From assembly GCF_035594765.1 (NCBI RefSeq), contig NC_085842.1:22544782-22608781 (forward strand): DNA of 64,000 nucleotides, in the 5' to 3' direction. Each line of letters opens with the position of its first letter. The first letter of the stretch is position 1. This stretch comes from Anolis carolinensis (lineage: Eukaryota). Below are positions 3,166 through 61,256 of the stretch, piece by piece. The notes beneath the pieces were generated by a model. The model saw nothing but the letters and a program-made list of their open reading frames with translations. It was not told the DNA's origin and did no database searches. Position numbers and translations under genes: made by a program.

Positions 3166-4442
3166 TCATGTGGTTGTCTCTCGAGAATGGATCCTCTTAT
3201 GTCTCCTGAGGGATGCTTTGTGACCAAAGCTCTGCCCACAGTCCGAGCATTCGTACGGCTTTTCTCCTGTGTGCACCCTCCGGTGATTGACCAAGTTGGA
3301 GTTCGTGCTGAACTTCTGCCCACAATCCAAGCACTGGTAGGGCTTCTCCCCCGTGTGGACCCTCCTGTGGTTGACCAGGTTTGAGCTCGTACTAAAGCCT
3401 TTTCCACATTCAGTGCATTCAAAAGGTTTCTCTCCAGTGTGGGTTCGCTCATGAATGAGAAGTTTGGACCGGCTGATAAAACTCTTCCGGCAGTAAGTGC
3501 ATTTGTGGCTTTCTTCCCCAGCTTGAGCTTTCTTCCCCGTGTGCAGCCGCTCGTGTTTCCGAAGGTAAGAGCTGGAAATAAAGCTTTTCCCACATTCGGC
3601 ACATTCGTATGGCTTCTCTCCTGTGTGGGTCCGCCCATGGATGATCAAGTCCGCTTTCTGATTGAAGCTCTTACCGCACTCCAAACACTCATAGGGTTTT
3701 TCCCCTGTGTGCGTCCGGATGTGTATGACAAGCTGTGGCCGATGGACGAAGCTCTGCCCACACTCATTGCACTTGTATGGCTTCTCCCCTGTGTGGACCC
3801 GCTTGTGGGTGATGAGGTTGGAGCTGGAGGTGAAGCTCTTCCCACACATGGGACACTCGTAGGGCTTCTCGCCAGTGTGGGTCCTCTCATGGACAATTAG
3901 AGAGGCTTTGTCACTGAAACTCCGGCCACAGTCAGAGCATTTGTACGGCTTCTCCCCAGTATGGACTCTGGTGTGCTTCATGAGGTTGCAGTTGGTGCTG
4001 AAACATTTGCCGCACTCAGAGCACTTGTACGGCTTCTCGCCAGTGTGCGTCCTCTCATGGATAATCATGTGGGCGCTGTTGTTGGAAATCTTCCCACAAT
4101 AGGTGCAGGTGTACAGTTTTTGTGTCTTCTGGTTTCGTGGAAAGTCAAAGCTACGACGCAAGACAGTCCCCCAGTTGGAGCTGGCCCTCTTCCGCTTGGC
4201 TTTGTGGTTTCCCTCTGAAAAGGGGCTCCCTTCCAAACGCTTCTGATGAATCAAAGCCTGGATCTCCGTCTGGCTCTCCCGGTGGATTTCTTGGCCCCGC
4301 TCATTCCCGGGAGTCTCTTCCAACCCACAAACTTGGAAGAATTTCCCATTGAGTCTTGCCAGTGACAGTCCACTGATCCCAATATCAGCGTGTCTTTCAA
4401 AAGGAAAACTCTCCTCCCCATTCTCGTATCCTTGGCAGTTGC
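3166..4442 (-). CDS. Gene A last exon: 11 C2H2 zinc fingers
   Basis: TTCCAACAG|GC phase-1 acceptor; 11 CxxC-x12-HxxxH units with TGEKP linkers, plus one extended linker between fingers 7 and 8. Confidence 0.95.
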
Positions 4443-4624
4443 CTGTTGGAAGAATTAATTCATATGTTTTTATCCATCTATTTAAAGCATTTTCATTCAT
4501 TATTCTTCACTTTGGAAGTGATAAACAATATTGCAAATAAATATAATTCATACAGATGTGTGGAACTGATTCTCTCCAGAAATTTCTAGGTTCATGGATT
4601 TAATTAAAAATGTTCCCTCTAGAA

Positions 4625-5258
4625 CAGTGGTTCCCAACCATTTTTTGACCAGGGACCACTTGATCAGGGACAACTTTGACCAGGGACCACTCTCCAACAT
4701 TAGTACCAAAAGTGTTATGAATCAGTTTTTGATCAACTTTAGATTCGGTTTGGTTATTTGGGGTGTTGATTGAGAAAATTGCATTGGATAGTCCACATCA
4801 GCTCTAGTTTCTGATACAGATACAGAATATTCCATTCAGTAGTCACCATCTGCTCACCCACAGAAAACTATATTTAATAATCTAGAGCTGATGTGGTCTA
4901 TTCAATTTTCTCAATCAGCACCCCAAATAACCCCAGGAAGAGGCCTAAAAACAAAGACACTAAGACAAAATTTATTTTGGATGGGTTGTATTATTATCCG
5001 TAGATTTTGTTAATGCTGATGTAAAAAAAAAAGAAAGGGAGGGGACTGAGATTGAAAAAAATACAAAACGCGGAGTGTGAGACCCAAGAAATTGTCCCTA
5101 ATAATTTTCTCTCACCTCTTTATCACGAACGCATAGTCACAAGGAAGGGGACGTGGTCCATGGGGCATTACAACCGTGTAGTAACGGTGAGGCTGCGGAC
5201 CATATTTTAGTTCTTGCGGACCACTGGTGTTCTGCAGGACACAGGTTGGGAACCACTG
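4625..5258. mobile_element. hAT (Charlie-like) non-autonomous element
   Basis: TIR CAGTGGTTCCCAACC; 8-bp target duplication CTCTAGAA on both sides. Confidence 0.88.
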
Positions 5259-8945: not shown

Positions 8946-8990
<45 letters not shown>

Positions 8991-9134
8991 CCCCTCCGCA
9001 GGTGCCACCTTGACGTGGTGGGGGGGCTTACCTGCTCCAATGATGACTGAGGGCTGTGCTGGCGGTAGTGTAACTACCGGCAGGTCCAACCAAGCCAGAG
9101 AGGCCTCAGCTGAGGAGCAGAACTAAGAGCACCT
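8991..9134 (+). ncRNA. Putative HDV-like self-cleaving ribozyme at the 5' end of the R4/Dong element
   Basis: P1 CCCCTCC/GGGGGGG, P2 AGGTGCC/G(A)GCACCT, P3 ACC/GGT, L3 TTGACGT, P4 CTGCTCC/GGAGCAG, J4/2 CTAA. P1 starts exactly at the element boundary. Confidence 0.7.
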
Positions 9135-9148
9135 AACCCATTAGCATT

Positions 9149-12100
9149 ATGGAGAATCAAACCCAAACGAAGTCTATACTGGCTCGGTCGTCGCCCAGGA
9201 TAAAAAGGACCGCGGTGGATGCTGCTGATTCTGGACATCCATCGACAAGTGGGCTACGGAATCATCAAAACTCAAATGAACAGTCACAGAAGCGGCAGAA
9301 ATACACAATGCCAGAAAACCGCACAATTATGAAATGCTACTACAAATCTGAACCTCAAAGGCGTGGCTACCAAAAAAGGATGCATCAACTGTGGAAACAA
9401 GAGTATCCTGACTCACAGATAACAGAACCCCGACTGGCTGACCAACGAAGATTCATAATCAGAAACAAAGTGTTCAGTGAAGTTGAACTTGAAGAAATCC
9501 AGAAAATTTGCAAAGTAAATTACCATCAGACCACAGCACAGACAGCAGCAGAGACTCCAGCAACACTTGGAATGGTGGAACAGATTGAACCAGAAGAATG
9601 TGTGGAGCTTTTGCAAGAATTTGATGAACCAGCACTTGAAACATCTGCTGAACCACCAGGAACCTTGACAGCAAGACAACAAGAGCTCAAGGATAAGATC
9701 ATGGCTCATGCTGCAGCAAATGCAATAAGACAGCGGCTCCCAACTCTAAAAACAGTGCCCAAGAGACACCTGGCGCCTCTCATGAAAGATGTGAATGCAG
9801 TACTCTCCACTGTCCAAATAACATCAATTGAACAAACAAACCAGTATGCCTATAGTGCAGCAGTGATAGTAACAGAAGAGCTTGGGCTCCTACAACCAAG
9901 GCAGCCCCAAAGAAAATCGACTGGAAAACCAAAGTGGAAGGTCAGGCTGGAGTTGAAAATCAAAAAGCTTAGATCAGATGCAAGTAACCTGAAAAATATG
10001 AAAGAGAAGAAACTGAAGAATGACAAAATCAAGCAATACCTGATCCGAAAGTACTGGCTGAACACCAGAAAAATTGAAGAAGCTTTGGAGATCGTGAAAG
10101 AACAAATTACAGCAACAGCCAGAAAAATTGAAAGGTATGAAGCCAGAATCATCCAGTACAGACAAAATCAACTGTTTCAATCAGACCAAAGACGGTTCTA
10201 CCAGAGTCTGAACCAAACAACAGACACAGTAACCATAAAACCAGAGAAAACTGCAACAACGAAGTTCTGGAAAGAACTTTGGGAAAACAATAAAAACTAC
10301 AACAAAAACGCTGGGTGGATAAAGGAGTTTGAAGGAAAATTCTCACAGAACAAAATGGAACTGATGGAAATAACAACTGAAATGATCAGCAAACGAGTGC
10401 AAAAAGTCAAGAACTGGACATCACCTGGTAGTGATCAACTTCATGGATTTTGGCTCAAACATCTGATTAGTTTACATGGAAAAATGGCCCAACAATTCAA
10501 TGAGATGCTGCAGAAAGGAAGTATCAGTGAATGGCTAACAACTGGAAGAACATACCTGATACAAAAGGATCCAACAAAAGGAGCAGCACCAGGAAACTAC
10601 AGGCCAATAACGTGTCTGCCCACTATGTTTAAACTACTGACTGGCATCATAGCTGACAGAATTCAAGACTATTTTGAAGAAAATAACATCTTGCCAGATG
10701 AACAGAAAGGCAACAAACGGAAAAGCAGGGGCACAAAAGACCAGTTATTGATTGACAAAATGATCCTGGAGAACTGTAAGAGCCGAAAAGCTAATCTTCA
10801 CATGACGTGGATTGACTACAAAAAGGCCTTTGACTCACTCCCACACAGCTGGATCATCAAGTGCCTGGACGCCATCGGGATTTGTAAAAACGTTGGCACC
10901 TTCATTGAAAACATGATGGAGCACTGGAAAACTGAACTGTTTGTTGGAAATGAAAGCTATGGACTTGTCAACATCAGAAGAGGAATTTTCCAGGGAGATT
11001 CATTGTCCCCTCTGCTTTTCATTATTGCCATGATCCCTCTGTCAACAATCTTACAAAAAACAAATCTCGGCTACCAAACATCTAAGAATTCTCACAAAAT
11101 TTCACATTTGATGTACATGGATGACCTGAAGCTATATGGGAAAACAGAAACTGAAATTCAGTCTCTGACCAACACTGTCCGAATTTTTAGCACTGATATC
11201 AACATGGAGTTTGGTTTGGACAAATGTTCGACAGTGGCATTGAAGAAGGGAAAAATCATTGAAAGTGAGGGCATAAATATGCCCAATGGCCAAACAATAA
11301 AGTGTCACCAGCCAGAGGCCTATAAATATCTGGGCATACTACAGCTGGACAACATCAAGCATGAACATGTGAAAACTGTGGTCAGCAAAGAATACACACA
11401 AAGGGTCAGAAAAATTCTCAAAAGCAAGCTCAATGGAGGCAACACCATCAAGGCCATAAACACCTGGGCCATACCTGTCATAAGATATACTGCTGGCATC
11501 ATAAACTGGACACAGATGGAACTGGACAATTTGGACAGAAAAACAAGAAAACTCATGACCATTCATCATTCACTGCACCCTCGCAGTGATGTTGACCGGC
11601 TATATCTGCCTAGAAGATCGGGGGCAGAGGACTCCTACAAGTAAAACAAGCAGTCAAAGAAGAAGAACATGCCCTGGCAGAATATGTAAAGCAAAGTGAA
11701 GAACCTGCTTTGATTGAAGTCAAAAATCAGAAACTCCTCAAAGCACAGCAGACAAAAAACCAGTACAAGAAAACCACACTACAAACTAGAGCTGACAACT
11801 GGCACAACAAAACATTGCATGGAAAGTTCCTTGACAAAATTGAAGGAAAAGCTGATAAGGAGAAGACCTGGCTCTGGCTCACAAATGGGACCCTGAAGAA
11901 GGAGACAGAAGGCCTGATCCTTGCAGCCCAGGAGCAAGCCATCAGGACAAATGCAATTAAGGCCAAGATCGAAAAATCAGCTGATGACCCAAAATGCAGA
12001 CTGTGCAAGGAAACAGATGAAACCATTGATCATATCCTCAGCTGCTGTAAAAAAATTGCACAGACAGACTACAAACAGAGGCACAACTATGTGGCCCAAA

Positions 12101-12561
12101 TGATTCATTGGAACTTATGCCTCAAGTACCACCTGCCAGCAGCAAAGAACTGGTGGGATCACAAACCTGCAAAAGTATTGGAAAATGAGCACGCAAAGAT
12201 ACTGTGGGACTTCCGAATCCAGACTGACAAAGTTCTGGAACACAACACACCAGACATCACAGTTGTGGAAAAGAACAAGGTTTGGATCATTGATGTTGCC
12301 ATCCCAGGTGACAGTCGCATTGACGAAAAACAACAGGAAAAACTCAGCCGCTATCAGGACCTCAAGATTGAACTTCAAAGACTCTGGCAGAAACCAGTGC
12401 AGGTGGTCCCGGTGGTGATGGGCACACTGGGTGCCGTGCCAAAAGATCTCAGCCGGCATTTGGAAACAATAGACATTGACAAAATTACGATCTGCCAACT
12501 GCAAAAAGCCACCCTGCTGGGATCTGCACGCATCATCCGAAAATACATCACACAGTCCTAG
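9149..12561 (+). pseudogene. R4/Dong polyprotein (RT + CCHC + RLE) with a 1-nt frameshift near 11620
   Basis: Motifs QGDSLSPLLF, YMDDL, YLGI, CRLC..E...HILSCC, RHN and PDI...IIDV. This copy reads AGATCGGGGGC where the copy at 60206 reads AGATCAGGGGGC, which is in frame. Confidence 0.9.
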
Positions 12562-12667
12562 ACACTTGGGAAGTGTTCGACTTGTGATTTTGTGAAACGA
12601 AACCCAGCATATCTATCTTGTTTGCTGTGTCATACAACGTCGTTGTGTCAATAATAATAATAATAAT

Positions 12668-13197
12668 AAGTACCACCTGCCAGCAGCAAAGAACTGGTGG
12701 GATCGCAAACCTACAAAAGTATTGGAAAATGAGCACGCAAAGATACTGTGGGACTTCCGAATCTAGACTGACAAAGTTCTGGAACACATCACACCAGACA
12801 TCACAGTTCTGGAAAAGAAAAAGGTTTGGATCGTTGATGTCGCTATCCCAGGTGACAGTCGCATTGACAAAAAACAACAGGAAAAACTCAGCTGCTATCA
12901 GGACCTCGAGATTGAACTGCAAAGACTCTGGCAGAAACCAGTGCTGGTGGTCCCGGTGGTGATGGGCACACTGGGTGCCGTGCCAAAAGATCTCAGCCGG
13001 CATTTGGAAACAATAGACATTGACAAAATTACGATCTGCCAACTGCAAAAGGCCACCCTGCTGGGATCTGCACGCATCATCCAAAAATACATCACACAGT
13101 CCTAGACACTTGGGAAGTGTTCGACTTGTGATTTTGTGATACGAAATCCAGCATATCTATCTTGTTTGCTGTGTCATAATAAAATAATAATAATAAT
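12668..13197 (+). mobile_element. 5'-truncated R4/Dong copy in tandem, inserted in the TAA tail of the first copy
   Basis: Highly similar to 12124-12632; ends in (AAT)n. Confidence 0.9.
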
Positions 13198-13928: not shown

Positions 13929-14597
13929 AGCCCCGGTGGCGAAGTGCATTAAAGCGCTGAGCTGCTGAACTTGCAGACCGAAAGGTCCTAGGTTCAAATC
14001 CCGGGAGCGGCAGGAGCACCCACTGTTAGCTCCAGCTCCTGCCAACCTAGCAGTTCAAAAACATGCAAATGTGAGTAGATCAATAGGTCCTGCTCCGGTG
14101 GGAAGGTAACGGCGCTCCACGCAGTCATGCCAGCCACATGACCTTAGAGGTGTCTACGGTCAACGCCGGCTCTTCGGCTTAGAAATGGAGATGAGCACCA
14201 ACCCCCAGAGTCAGAAATGACTGGACTTAACATCAGGGGAAACCTCTACCTTTACCTATGCATGTGAATGGGAGTCCTGGTGGCGAAGTGTGTTAAAGCA
14301 CTGAGCTGCTGAACTTGCAGACCGAAAGGTCGCAGGTTCAAATCCCGGGAGCGGAATGAGCGCCCACTGTTAGCCCCAGCTCCTGCCAACCTAGCAGTTC
14401 AAAAACATGCAAATGTGAGTAGATCAATAGGTCCTGCTCCGGTGGGAAGGTAACGGCGCTCCATGCAGTCATGCCGGCTACATGACCTTAGAAGTGTCTA
14501 CGGTCAACGCCGGTTCTTCGGCTTAGAAATGGAGATGAGCACCAACCCCCAGAGTCAGACATGACTGGACTTAACGTCAGGGGAAACCTTTACCTTT
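13929..14597 (+). mobile_element. Two adjacent Sauria SINE copies (13929-14257 and 14270-14597)
   Basis: tRNA-like A/B boxes (GTGGCGAAGTG, GGTTCAAATCC), Sauria body and ACCTTT 3' repeats. Confidence 0.85.
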
Positions 14598-15638
14598 ATG
14601 CATGTGAATATGTTTGTGTGTATTCTTTCCCCGCCCTGTATTATTGTGCGAGAAGTTCTGCATAAACAAGACTGCAATTAATTGAGCCTCGATGGACAAA
14701 AGCACTGTGCCCCTGAATTCCTACTGGTGTGAGTTGCCCAGGGCTCATCCACAATTACCAATCAGGCTACTTTGTAGTCCTGCTATATGGTCGAGTGCAA
14801 ATATGTCCTTAGTGGGAAGGGGGGAGATGCTTTTGGGATTTGCTCCTGGTTTGCATTCTCCTCCTCCTCCCTCACGCCCACCTTTGGCCCCTTGGCCACC
14901 TTTTGCCTCCAGGCCTGGCCATACCAGTTCCTTTTGGCAAAGGTGACGCTCTCACCAGCAACTGCTTCTTCCCGGGCTCCTCCGTGGGACAGGAAAGGAC
15001 AGCACCAGACCCACTCTCACCCCCCTCTGCCATTGTTCGCATTTCCTGCCTCTCTGAGACTGGCAGAGCTCGCTGGATTAACCATTGGAGCACCAGGAGC
15101 AGGGAAGGGGGGAACCTGGCTGCTCTCTAGGGATGCATCTACATAGTTGAATCTGCACAGTCAAGCTGCATTCATTCGACAGATTAGATGCACCCTAGGC
15201 TTCCCTGGGTGCCTTGCATTTGGCATGCCACCTGACGCTCATGCACGCCCAGAGTGACATAAGGTCCATCTCTAGTAAATGCAGTTTGGCACTACTAGAA
15301 TTGCCAGGGCTGAATGCTACAGAATAGCAGGAAAAGTAGCTTTGCAAGGTCTTTGGCCTTCTCTAGCCCAAGAGTGCTGGGGCCACACCAGACTACAATT
15401 CCCAGGCTTCTATAGCACTGAGCCATGGCAGTTCAAGTGATGTCGAAACTGCATCCGCCTAACAGTGCAAAAATTGGTTGCACACATCCAAAAAAGGTAA
15501 CAATTGGCTGAAAGATTAAAAGAAACAAAAAATAATAACAGTTGATTTTGTTATTGGGTTACTGTGAGTTTTCCGGGCTGTATGGCCATGTTCCAGAAGC
15601 ATTCTCTCCTGACATTTCGCCCACATCTATGACAGGAA

Positions 15639-27232: not shown

Positions 27233-28069
27233 CACGCCATAGCATTGGACCAGCTCAATTAAAGTGGGGTCAATCTGCATTCATTCTGCAGTGTAGATGT
27301 ACCCCAGATCTCCTTGTTGTTAAGCGCAAAGGATGAACAATTCAAAGCTTAGCAAGAATGCACATCTGAATCATGTTCTAGGAGGGAAGGGAGAAAGGGC
27401 TATGGGATGTGCTCTGTGGAATAAATAAATAAATCTGCCTTCCCTCTTCCCTCCAACCCCCTTCCCCAAATCTGCTTTGGAAACTTACAGAAACCCAGGC
27501 GAGGCCTCCAGCGTCTCTCCCCAAATGGAAACAAACAAAGCCAGGACCCTCTCTTGTGCATTTGCAAGGCAAGGCCTGTCCTTTGCAAGCTGGGTGCATT
27601 CACTTCTGAGTGTACCCGCTTTTAGGGGCGCAGGGCGTTTGGGAGAGCAAACAAACACAGCCAGGTGGCAAATCTGCAGAGCAGCTGGTCCAGGAGGTGC
27701 CTTCAATACAGAGAAATGGTCCCTCCCTCTTTGCCCTCCTCTTCCTCTCTAGCAACTGAGATCTGTGGATTTAACCCTGAGAGAACTAAATGGATTGCTA
27801 GTAGCTACCCATGGAGATATTTTGCTCCTGTGGTTTGAATTCATTGCTCACAGCAACCCATTGACAATTTTGACCACCCTTCTTTAGACACCTTCCAGCT
27901 TGTCAATATCTTTCTTGAATTGTGGTGCCCAGAGCTGGGACCAGTATTATCCCAGGTGAGGTCTGTCCAAATCAGAATAAAGTGGGACTATGACCTCCCT
28001 AATTTAAAACACTATACTCCTATTGATGCAGTTTAGAATCGAGTCGGCTTTTTGAGCTGCTGTATCACA

Positions 28070-59721: not shown

Positions 59722-61256
59722 AAATCTCACAAAATTTCGCATCTGATGTACATGGATGACCTGAAGCTGTATGGGAAAACGGAAACTGAAATCCAGTCTC
59801 TGACTAACACTGTCCGAAGTTTTAGCACTGATATCAGCATGGGAAAAATCATTGAAAGTGAGAGCATAAATATGCCTAATGGCCAAACGATAAAGTGTCA
59901 CCAACCAGAGGCCTATAAATATCTGGGCATATTACAGCTGGACAACATCAAGCATGAACATGTGAAAACTGGTCAGCAAAGAATACACACAAAGGGTCAG
60001 AAAAATTCTCAAAAGCAAGCCCAATGGAGGCAACACCATCAAGGCCATAAACACCTGGGCCATACCTGTCATAAGATATACTGCTGGCATCATACACTGG
60101 ACACAGATGGAACTGGACAATTTGGACAGAAAACCAAGAAAACTCATGACCATTCATCATTCACTGCACCCTCGCAGTGATGTTGACCGGCTCTATCTGC
60201 CTAGAAGATCAGGGGGCAGAGGACTCTTACAAGTAAAACAAGCAGTCAAAGAAGAAGAACATGCCCTGGCAGAATATGTAAAGCAAAGTGAAGAACCTGC
60301 TTTGATTGAAGTCAAAAATCAGAAACTCCTCAAAGCACAGCAGACAAAAAACCAGTACAAGAAAACCGCACTACAAACTAGAGCCAACAGCTGGCACGAC
60401 AAAACATTGCATGGAAAGTTCCTTGACAAAATTGAAGGAAAAGCTGATAAGGAGAAGACCTGGCTCTGGCTCACAAATGGGACCCTGAAGAAGGAGACAG
60501 AAGGCCTGATCCTTGCAGCCCAGGAGCAAGCCATCAGAGCAAAAGCAATTAAGGCCAAGATCGAAAAATCAGCTGATGACCCAAAATGCAGACTGTGCAA
60601 GGAAGCTGACGAAACCATTGATCATATCCTCAGCTGCTGTAAGAAAATCGCACAGACTACAAACAGAGGCACAACTGTGTGGCCCAAATGATTCATTGGA
60701 ACTTATGCCTCAAGTACCACCTCCCAGCAGCAAAGAACTGGTGGGATCACAAACCTGCAAAAGTATTGGAAAATGAGCACGCAAAGATACTGTGGGACGT
60801 CCGAATCCAGACTGACAAATTTCTGGAACACAACACACCAGACATCACAGTTGTGGAAAAGAAAAGGGTTTGGATCATTGAGGTTGCCATCCCAGGTGAC
60901 AGCTGTATTGACGAAAAACAACAGGAAAAACTCAGCCGCTATCAGGACCTCAGGATCGAACTTCAAAGACTCTGGCAGAAACCAGTAAAGGTGGTCCCGG
61001 TGGTGATCGGCACATTGGGTGCCGTGCCAAAAGATCTCAGCCAGCATTTGGAAACAATAGACATTGACAAAATTACAATTTGTCAACTGCAAAAGGCCAC
61101 CCTACTGGGATCTGCATGCATCATCCGAAAATACATCACACAGTCCTAGACACTTGGGAAGTCTTCGACTTGTGATTTTGTGATACGAAATTCAGCATAT
61201 CTTTCTAGTTTGCTGTCATACTATGTCGTTCTGTCAATAATAATAATAATAATAAT
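59722..61256 (+). mobile_element. 5'-truncated R4/Dong copy with indels
   Basis: Matches 11087-12650 from just upstream of YMDD to the 3' UTR; (TAA)n tail; small deletions break the ORF. Confidence 0.92.

Follow-up and report, generated by a model that had tools for sequence, protein, structure and literature searches.

The 5' end of a Dong/R4 retrotransposon of the green anole very probably forms a ribozyme of the HDV-like type that cleaves itself. The sequence concerned, positions 8991-9134 of the 64,000 nucleotides of Anolis carolinensis DNA that were analysed as a whole (the window), is the head of a LINE specific for (TAA)n, and we would expect the family version of this RNA to cleave itself. 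This likelihood rests on the fold, on its position at base 1 of the element, on its near-identity to L1Tco(78)Rz, a ribozyme active in vitro, and on its conservation among copies.

Results

The host element is a non-LTR retrotransposon of the Dong/R4 clade, 3,678 bp in length (8991-12668, plus strand), inserted in an (AAT)n microsatellite. Its parts, and the other copies of the same family, are arranged in the window as follows:

8946-8990, plus strand: target microsatellite (AAT)15; transcripts that read through it would carry it as their 5' leader; nucleotide -1 is U8990
9135-9148, plus strand: linker of 14 nt between the candidate ribozyme and the start codon
9149-12561, plus strand: Dong/R4 ORF with RT, zf-RVT and C-terminal restriction-like endonuclease region
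12562-12668, plus strand: 3' UTR, with (AAT)n at ~12650-12668 as the element end
12668-13178, plus strand: second copy, 5'-truncated and without the ribozyme, in direct tandem behind the full-length element
59722-61254: third copy of the same Dong family, 5'-truncated

The start codon ATG of the ORF is at 9149, 15 nt past the end of P2. The frame that opens there matches RVT_1, and the downstream frame matches zf-RVT and, weakly, a bunyavirus L-protein N-terminal family, a match that we interpret as a PD-(D/E)XK-type endonuclease. The product is 96-97% identical to Anolis carolinensis RT proteins; the ORF is 97-99% identical to an intact one of these with 1137 aa, relative to which one frameshift near 11620-11626 breaks the ORF of the window copy. 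The features of Dong/R4 membership are present, namely a single ORF, an RT with a C-terminal restriction-like endonuclease, (AAT)n on both sides and relatives residing in (TAA)n. The original prediction of a vertebrate R4/Dong element in (TAA)n is thus borne out by the RVT_1 and zf-RVT matches, by the flanking (AAT)n and by the identity to Anolis proteins.

There are no further full-length copies of the element in the window, both other copies being 5'-truncated. The tandem copy at 12668-13178 shares the (AAT)n of the full-length element; truncated Dong copies in tandem are what repeated insertion into a microsatellite regenerated by each copy is expected to leave. Another tandem array lies further downstream, at 13935-14598, where a 344-bp unit containing the tRNA-like T-arm GGTTCAAATCCC is repeated 1.9 times with 94% matches. 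This repeat is probably a tandem tRNA-headed lizard SINE, and more copies of the T-arm unit were seen at 28058 and 37941.

At 8991 the RNA can be drawn as a nested double pseudoknot whose elements succeed one another as P1-J1/2-P2-P3-L3-P3'-P1'-J1/4-P4-J4/2-P2', with the following parts:

8991-8997, plus strand: P1 5' strand, CCCCUCC; cleavage is predicted between U8990 and C8991
8998-8999, plus strand: J1/2, GC
9000-9006, plus strand: P2 5' strand, AGGUGCC
9007-9009 with 9017-9019, plus strand: P3, ACC/GGU, enclosing L3, UUGACGU
9020-9026, plus strand: P1 3' strand, GGGGGGG; P1 has 7 bp, one of them G.U
9027, plus strand: J1/4, C9027, a proposed partner of G9012 in a one-pair P1.1
9028-9122, plus strand: enlarged P4 domain, ~95 nt
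9123-9126, plus strand: J4/2, CUAA, with the candidate catalytic C9123
9127-9134, plus strand: P2 3' strand, made of G9127, bulged A9128 and GCACCU (9129-9134)

Every pairing of the original prediction was found in place, and our descriptor script returns the same arrangement at 8991. Neither P1.1 nor the closure of P4 had been given there, and as drawn J1/4 would read CUUAC and two A's would stand between P4 and C9123. We propose that P1.1 is formed by G9012, the third base of L3, and C9027, and that two pairs, U9028-A9122 and U9029-A9121, close P4, while A9030 and N9031 bulge out before the stem 9032-9038/9114-9120. As U9028-A9122 would close P4, C9123 would adjoin it. Only a single pair is possible in P1.1, and both G9012 and C9027 are invariant within the anole family; the P1.1 of L1TcRz has also been described as a single pair (PMC3185411, PMC4035085). 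The candidate catalytic C of the C-N-R-A motif in J4/2 is present as C9123-U-A-A, followed by G9127. In L3, the bases U9010, C9014 and G9015 presumably match U20, C24 and G25 of HDV. A conserved C and G are also described for the L3 of R2 ribozymes (PMC3774820).

At its base, P4 forms a canonical box C/D kink-turn; a long imperfect hairpin makes up the distal part. The kink-turn is composed of:

9032-9038/9114-9120: C-stem, 7 bp
9039-9041: loop, AAU
G9042.A9113, A9043.G9112, U9044.U9111 and G9045-C9110: non-canonical stem
9040-9046: box C, AUGAUGA
9110-9113: box D, CUGA

Among the anole copies, no site inside the kink-turn boxes varies at 5% of depth or more; a diverged anole subfamily has AGGAUGA as its box C. 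Models of C/D snoRNAs in Rfam gave weak matches on P4. We take the P4 kink-turn to be a peripheral domain of the ribozyme, where proteins may be loaded.

How readily such a fold could be drawn elsewhere was assessed with a loose HDV descriptor, consisting of a 7-bp P1, a P3 of 3 bp that encloses a loop of 6-9 nt and adjoins P1' directly, a P2 of 6-7 bp flush with P3 and with 0 or 1 bulge, and C-N-R-A flush with P2'. When the start was fixed at base 1 of the element, 2 of 20,000 dinucleotide shuffles of 8991-9250 fitted it (~1e-4), whereas with a free start it fitted ~51 places in the 128 kb that make up both strands of the window, many of these (TG)n-like. It is therefore the start position that gives the drawing its significance. 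The sequence of the ribozyme core occurs once in the window, and the MFE z-score of 8991-9148, which is that of a nested fold, is unremarkable (-1.14). Covariance models lent no support to the original prediction of an HDV-like ribozyme: in Rfam 15 (E ≤ 10), neither 8 kb of sequence nor the 166 nt alone matched any HDV-like family, be it HDV, CPEB3 or a related curated model, and the only matches were chance fragments of miRNAs and C/D snoRNAs. We take the HDV-like models of Rfam to be narrow and devoid of pseudoknot information, and a P4 of 95 nt would presumably lower any score. An exact search for the core in IMG/VR returned 0 matches.

A closer counterpart was found in trypanosomes. The supplement of PMC4035085 gives the sequence with which T. 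congolense L1Tco begins at its 5' end, and L1Tco(78)Rz was reported in that paper to cleave co-transcriptionally in vitro. The anole leader was aligned by hand with this printed sequence, and only a 17-nt pattern was searched by program: the L1Tco 17-mer GCCACCTCAACGTGGTG, with up to 2 mismatches allowed, has its sole match in the window at 9004-9020 (2 mismatches), with 0 matches expected from shuffles. The stretch common to L1Tco and the anole reads GCCACCU..ACGUGGUG, with 15 of 17 core bases identical, so that the likeness to L1Tc/ingi, which had been put forward in the original prediction, is verified against a published sequence. Counted by hand, ~26 of the 36 bases from P1 to P1' are identical. 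Both sequences stand at base 1 of a LINE and begin P1 with C (CCC...); they have an identical P3 (ACC/GGU), an identical J4/2 (CUAA), and an L3 of the form U-Y-R-ACGU with 5/7 bases identical. In both, the first pair of P2 is C-G and a single nucleotide bulges out behind it (U in L1Tco, A9128 in the anole); with the proposed P1.1 of one pair, J1/4 is one nucleotide long in each. The 3' end of L1Tco(78) coincides exactly with the end of P2. The pairs in which the two differ are:

P1 pair 4: U-A in L1Tco, C-G in the anole
P1 pair 5: G-C in L1Tco, U.G in the anole
P1 pair 6: G-C in L1Tco, C-G in the anole
Proposed P1.1, pair 1: A-U in L1Tco, G-C in the anole
P2 pair 4: G-C in L1Tco, U-A in the anole
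P2 pair 5: mismatch C x A in L1Tco, G-C in the anole
P2 pair 6: C-G in L1Tco, G-C in the anole
P2 pair 7: G-C in L1Tco, A-U in the anole

Over 18 pairs there are seven double-sided changes that still pair (three in P1, one in P1.1 and three in P2), and none is broken in the anole. Such a pattern is expected of a selected RNA fold, be it homologous or convergent. The change in P1.1 concerns A23 and U38 of L1Tco, the equivalents of G9012-C9027, whose pair would be kept through a double change; the P1.1 of L1Tco was assigned by analogy. The two ribozymes differ in their hosts, an RLE-type Dong/R4 element of a vertebrate as against APE-type ingi/L1Tc elements of kinetoplastids, in the size of P4 (~95 nt with a kink-turn in the anole, ~25 nt in L1Tco/L1Tc) and in total length (144 versus 77-78 nt). 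The anole sequence therefore bears the core signature of the Pr77/L1Tc type but neither its compact size of 77-78 nt nor its trypanosomatid host. A literature search with incomplete coverage of journals retrieved no report of such a ribozyme in Anolis, or of a Pr77-type core outside trypanosomatids.

Variation within the family was read from Logan contigs of four runs over 8976-9500, two of which come from the organism of the window and the other two from different organisms. These summaries give variant frequencies, across thousands of copies in the runs of the window organism, without linkage between sites. Sites that vary at 5% of depth or more are 9031, 9034, 9052, 9063/64, 9078/79, 9104, 9118/19, 9120 and 9124. 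None lies in 8991-9030, which covers P1, J1/2, P2, P3, L3 and P1', or in 9125-9148, despite the presence of CpGs there, and CpGs vary elsewhere. The only base of J4/2 that varies (U/C) is 9124, the free second base of C-N-R-A, and at 9031, the proposed bulge, the C of the window copy is rare while G and A dominate. The variable sites in P4 pair with each other in the MFE fold (G9034-C9118, G9052-C9104 and G9064-C9078, or alternatively C9063-G9079), and a change of CA to UG at 9118-9119 would leave two wobble pairs. In the diverged subfamily, which was represented by loose contig ends only, base 9035 is U and base 9117 is A. This pattern is suggestive of an RNA fold, although it is not proof of one. 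Of the conservation and covariation expected across copies, conservation of the core was observed; covariation within the family is not proven, since linkage between sites is not contained in contig summaries and most of the changes are CpG transitions.

Five further anole loci were reached through NCBI proteins of the same clusters, and one of them, L085 (assembly GCA_035594765.1), contains the 5' end, while L086-L089 do not. It is an independent copy in which (AAT)n gives way to the element at the same base. At 8995 its U is replaced by C, turning the U.G of P1 into C-G; it also has U at 9104, turning a G-C of P4 into G.U, and both of these changes keep the pairing. At 9031 it has A. An insertion of ~0.85 kb with a 6-bp duplication (4087-4940 of this locus) interrupts its distal P4, with the core intact on both sides.

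The relatives of the element were scanned at four protein-derived loci and 80 metagenome loci. The nearest of those fetched share 62-65% of their amino acids with the anole protein between residues 430 and 1130, from the RT to the C-terminus, and they start directly after (AAT)n with tRNA-like heads instead of an HDV-like one. Such heads, which carry A-box and B-box/T-arm motifs in the metagenome Dong/R4 elements, were seen at L002 2335-2412, L024 84-167, L001 5848-5930, L005 10-90, L007 25-100, L009 ~106-190 (after GATAAT repeats), L018 and L031 1-80. The Rfam tRNA model reached at least its gathering score on two of them (L002 2340-2412 and L024 84-167), the others being too degenerate, and ARAGORN made no calls on the tRNA-like heads. 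The tRNA-like head could be a substitute for the ribozyme that is processed by RNase P, or a pol III promoter. At ~20 other Dong-clade 5' junctions from metagenomes the HDV descriptor had no fit, and the L1Tc-type core was found in none of the loci scanned. One candidate was discarded: L026 54-120, after (TAA)n in a distant Dong relative, contains the P1/P3/L3-like arrangement CCCGCCC...GGA UUAGCG UCC GGGCGGG, for which no P2 or C-N-R-A partner was found. With tRNA-like heads on the relatives and an HDV-like head in the anole, the heads of the Dong clade look modular and exchangeable.

A separate observation concerns the beginning of the ORF, where the nucleotides encoding the peptide I-x-A-R-S-S-P are conserved between the window (9175-9220), L002 (2484-2535) and L007 (178-230). 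The nucleotides kept are ..CGGUCGUCGCCCrGG..AAGGrCCGCG.., although the elements have only ~43% identity in the corresponding protein segment. Either the peptide itself or an RNA element within the start of the coding region could be what is conserved.

Discussion

Ribozymes at the 5' junction have precedents within the Dong/R4 clade. In Eickbush and Eickbush (2013, PMC3774820), the RNA of B. mori Dong was shown to cleave itself at the junction between (TAA)n and the element, which releases a 21-nt (TAA)7 leader; Dong and R4 are placed among the elements that cut at their 5' junction, and the Ascaris R4 ribozyme is cited as cutting at its element's 5' end (Ruminski 2011, as cited in PMC3774820). 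The silkmoth Dong and R4 elements share with the anole element the clade and the (TAA)n target, and their HDV-like ribozymes lie, like the anole candidate, at the exact 5' junction. The silkmoth Dong starts with GCUCCCU... and the anole element with CCCCUCC..., a comparison limited to the first 18 nt of silkmoth Dong, as given by a primer. That an R4/Dong element carries an HDV-like fold exactly at its 5' end is supported in silico and by this B. mori precedent.

The R2 ribozymes of insects, birds and others, which process a co-transcript, have in common with the anole candidate the HDV-like double pseudoknot and the fact that their host LINE is RLE-type and carries them in its 5' UTR. They usually cut inside the upstream 28S (for example at -28) and often combine a huge J1/2 with little P4, whereas in anole Dong the cut is predicted at the junction, J1/2 has 2 nt and P4 is large. 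The genomic and antigenomic HDV ribozymes and CPEB3 have the same topology as the anole candidate, and we take the U..CG of L3, the C-N-R-A of J4/2 and the 3-bp P3 to be shared as well. The pair at +1 is C-G in the anole, as in the L1Tc family, rather than the G.U of HDV, and the one G-C pair proposed for P1.1 is opposite in orientation to that of HDV/CPEB3.

In the mechanism that we propose, the element would need no start site of its own, because any transcript that enters the element by read-through from an (AAT)n locus would suffice. The read-through RNA would fold co-transcriptionally into the nested double pseudoknot, C9123 of J4/2 would act as the general acid/base, and the chain would be cut between U8990 and C8991, releasing a 5'-OH RNA that begins with the first base of the element. 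This would explain why full-length copies start exactly at that base. The leader, made of A and U only, would neither extend P1 nor compete with the G/C-rich core, and the large P4 domain would be peripheral to catalysis. We infer both the cleavage and the role of C9123.

The same bases might instead constitute an internal promoter like the Pr77 of L1Tc, directing transcription from 8991 with or without ribozyme activity. PMC3383444 assigns both a promoter and a ribozyme to the first 77 nt of L1Tc, and the 15/17 identity of the anole core to that of L1Tco would fit such a dual function. The promoter activity of Pr77, however, is known from trypanosomatids only, and the compensatory changes by which P1 and P2 of the anole differ from those of L1Tco suggest that selection acts on the pairing of the RNA and not on a motif in the DNA. 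We consider a promoter at these bases unlikely, and it would not exclude the ribozyme in any case. Mere resemblance by chance in a G/C-rich 5' UTR might be suspected from the ~51 starts of the loose descriptor in the window, from the modest MFE z-score and from the lack of an HDV match in Rfam. Yet the probability at the fixed start is ~1e-4, an independent 17-mer taken from a proven ribozyme matches at 9004-9020 and nowhere else in the window, the core is conserved among copies, and both Dong and R4 offer precedents (PMC3774820). Chance is thus very unlikely as an explanation.

Alternatively, the leader may be structured but no longer cutting, and may serve to bind the element protein, to start translation or to load SNU13/snoRNP through the P4 kink-turn. 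The 5' RNA of R2 binds the R2 protein, and work by Ruminski in 2011 is said to indicate that HDV-like folds help translation initiation. The canonical box C/D kink-turn, whose boxes hold no site varying at 5% or more, would also suit such a function. Against a leader that has lost cleavage stand the catalytic bases, as C9123, the U, C and G of L3 and a P1 that runs from base 1 are all present and invariant among copies, and the fact that the elements begin exactly at the predicted cut. Roles in binding or translation could moreover be added to cleavage without replacing it. We regard a non-cleaving leader as quite improbable, and the self-cleaving ribozyme remains our preferred explanation.

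As to how a core of this kind came to stand on a lizard Dong element, the exchange of the module between clades, an idea contained in the original prediction, is plausible and finds some support in the tRNA-headed relatives, which themselves point to no donor. One may speculate further, and rather against expectation, that the Pr77/L1Tc-type ribozyme is a portable 5' cassette that moved between ingi/L1Tc, possibly RTE, and Dong. According to this speculation, it would have replaced an ancestral tRNA-like head in anole Dong, and the P4 kink-turn would load SNU13/snoRNP, protecting or routing the uncapped 5'-OH RNA in the manner of snoRNA-capped lncRNAs.

The anole Dong candidate is of a kind already known in the Dong clade since 2013 and does not represent a new mechanism, given the self-cleavage of B. 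mori Dong (PMC3774820). It extends the 5' ribozymes of Dong/R4, as a candidate by sequence and fold, to a young and abundant family of vertebrate elements, some copies of which are nearly intact and whose ORFs of 1137 aa are represented in the anole proteome. RNA-templated gene insertion is making use of site-specific RLE LINEs and their ribozyme heads (reviewed in PMC13708176), which lends practical interest to a compact, junction-cutting head of an element that targets microsatellites. A core that was thought typical of the L1Tc/ingi elements of trypanosomatids recurs with little change in a lizard, on a LINE clade unrelated to them, and, together with the tRNA-like heads of the Dong relatives, this makes the modules that process the 5' ends of LINEs look interchangeable.
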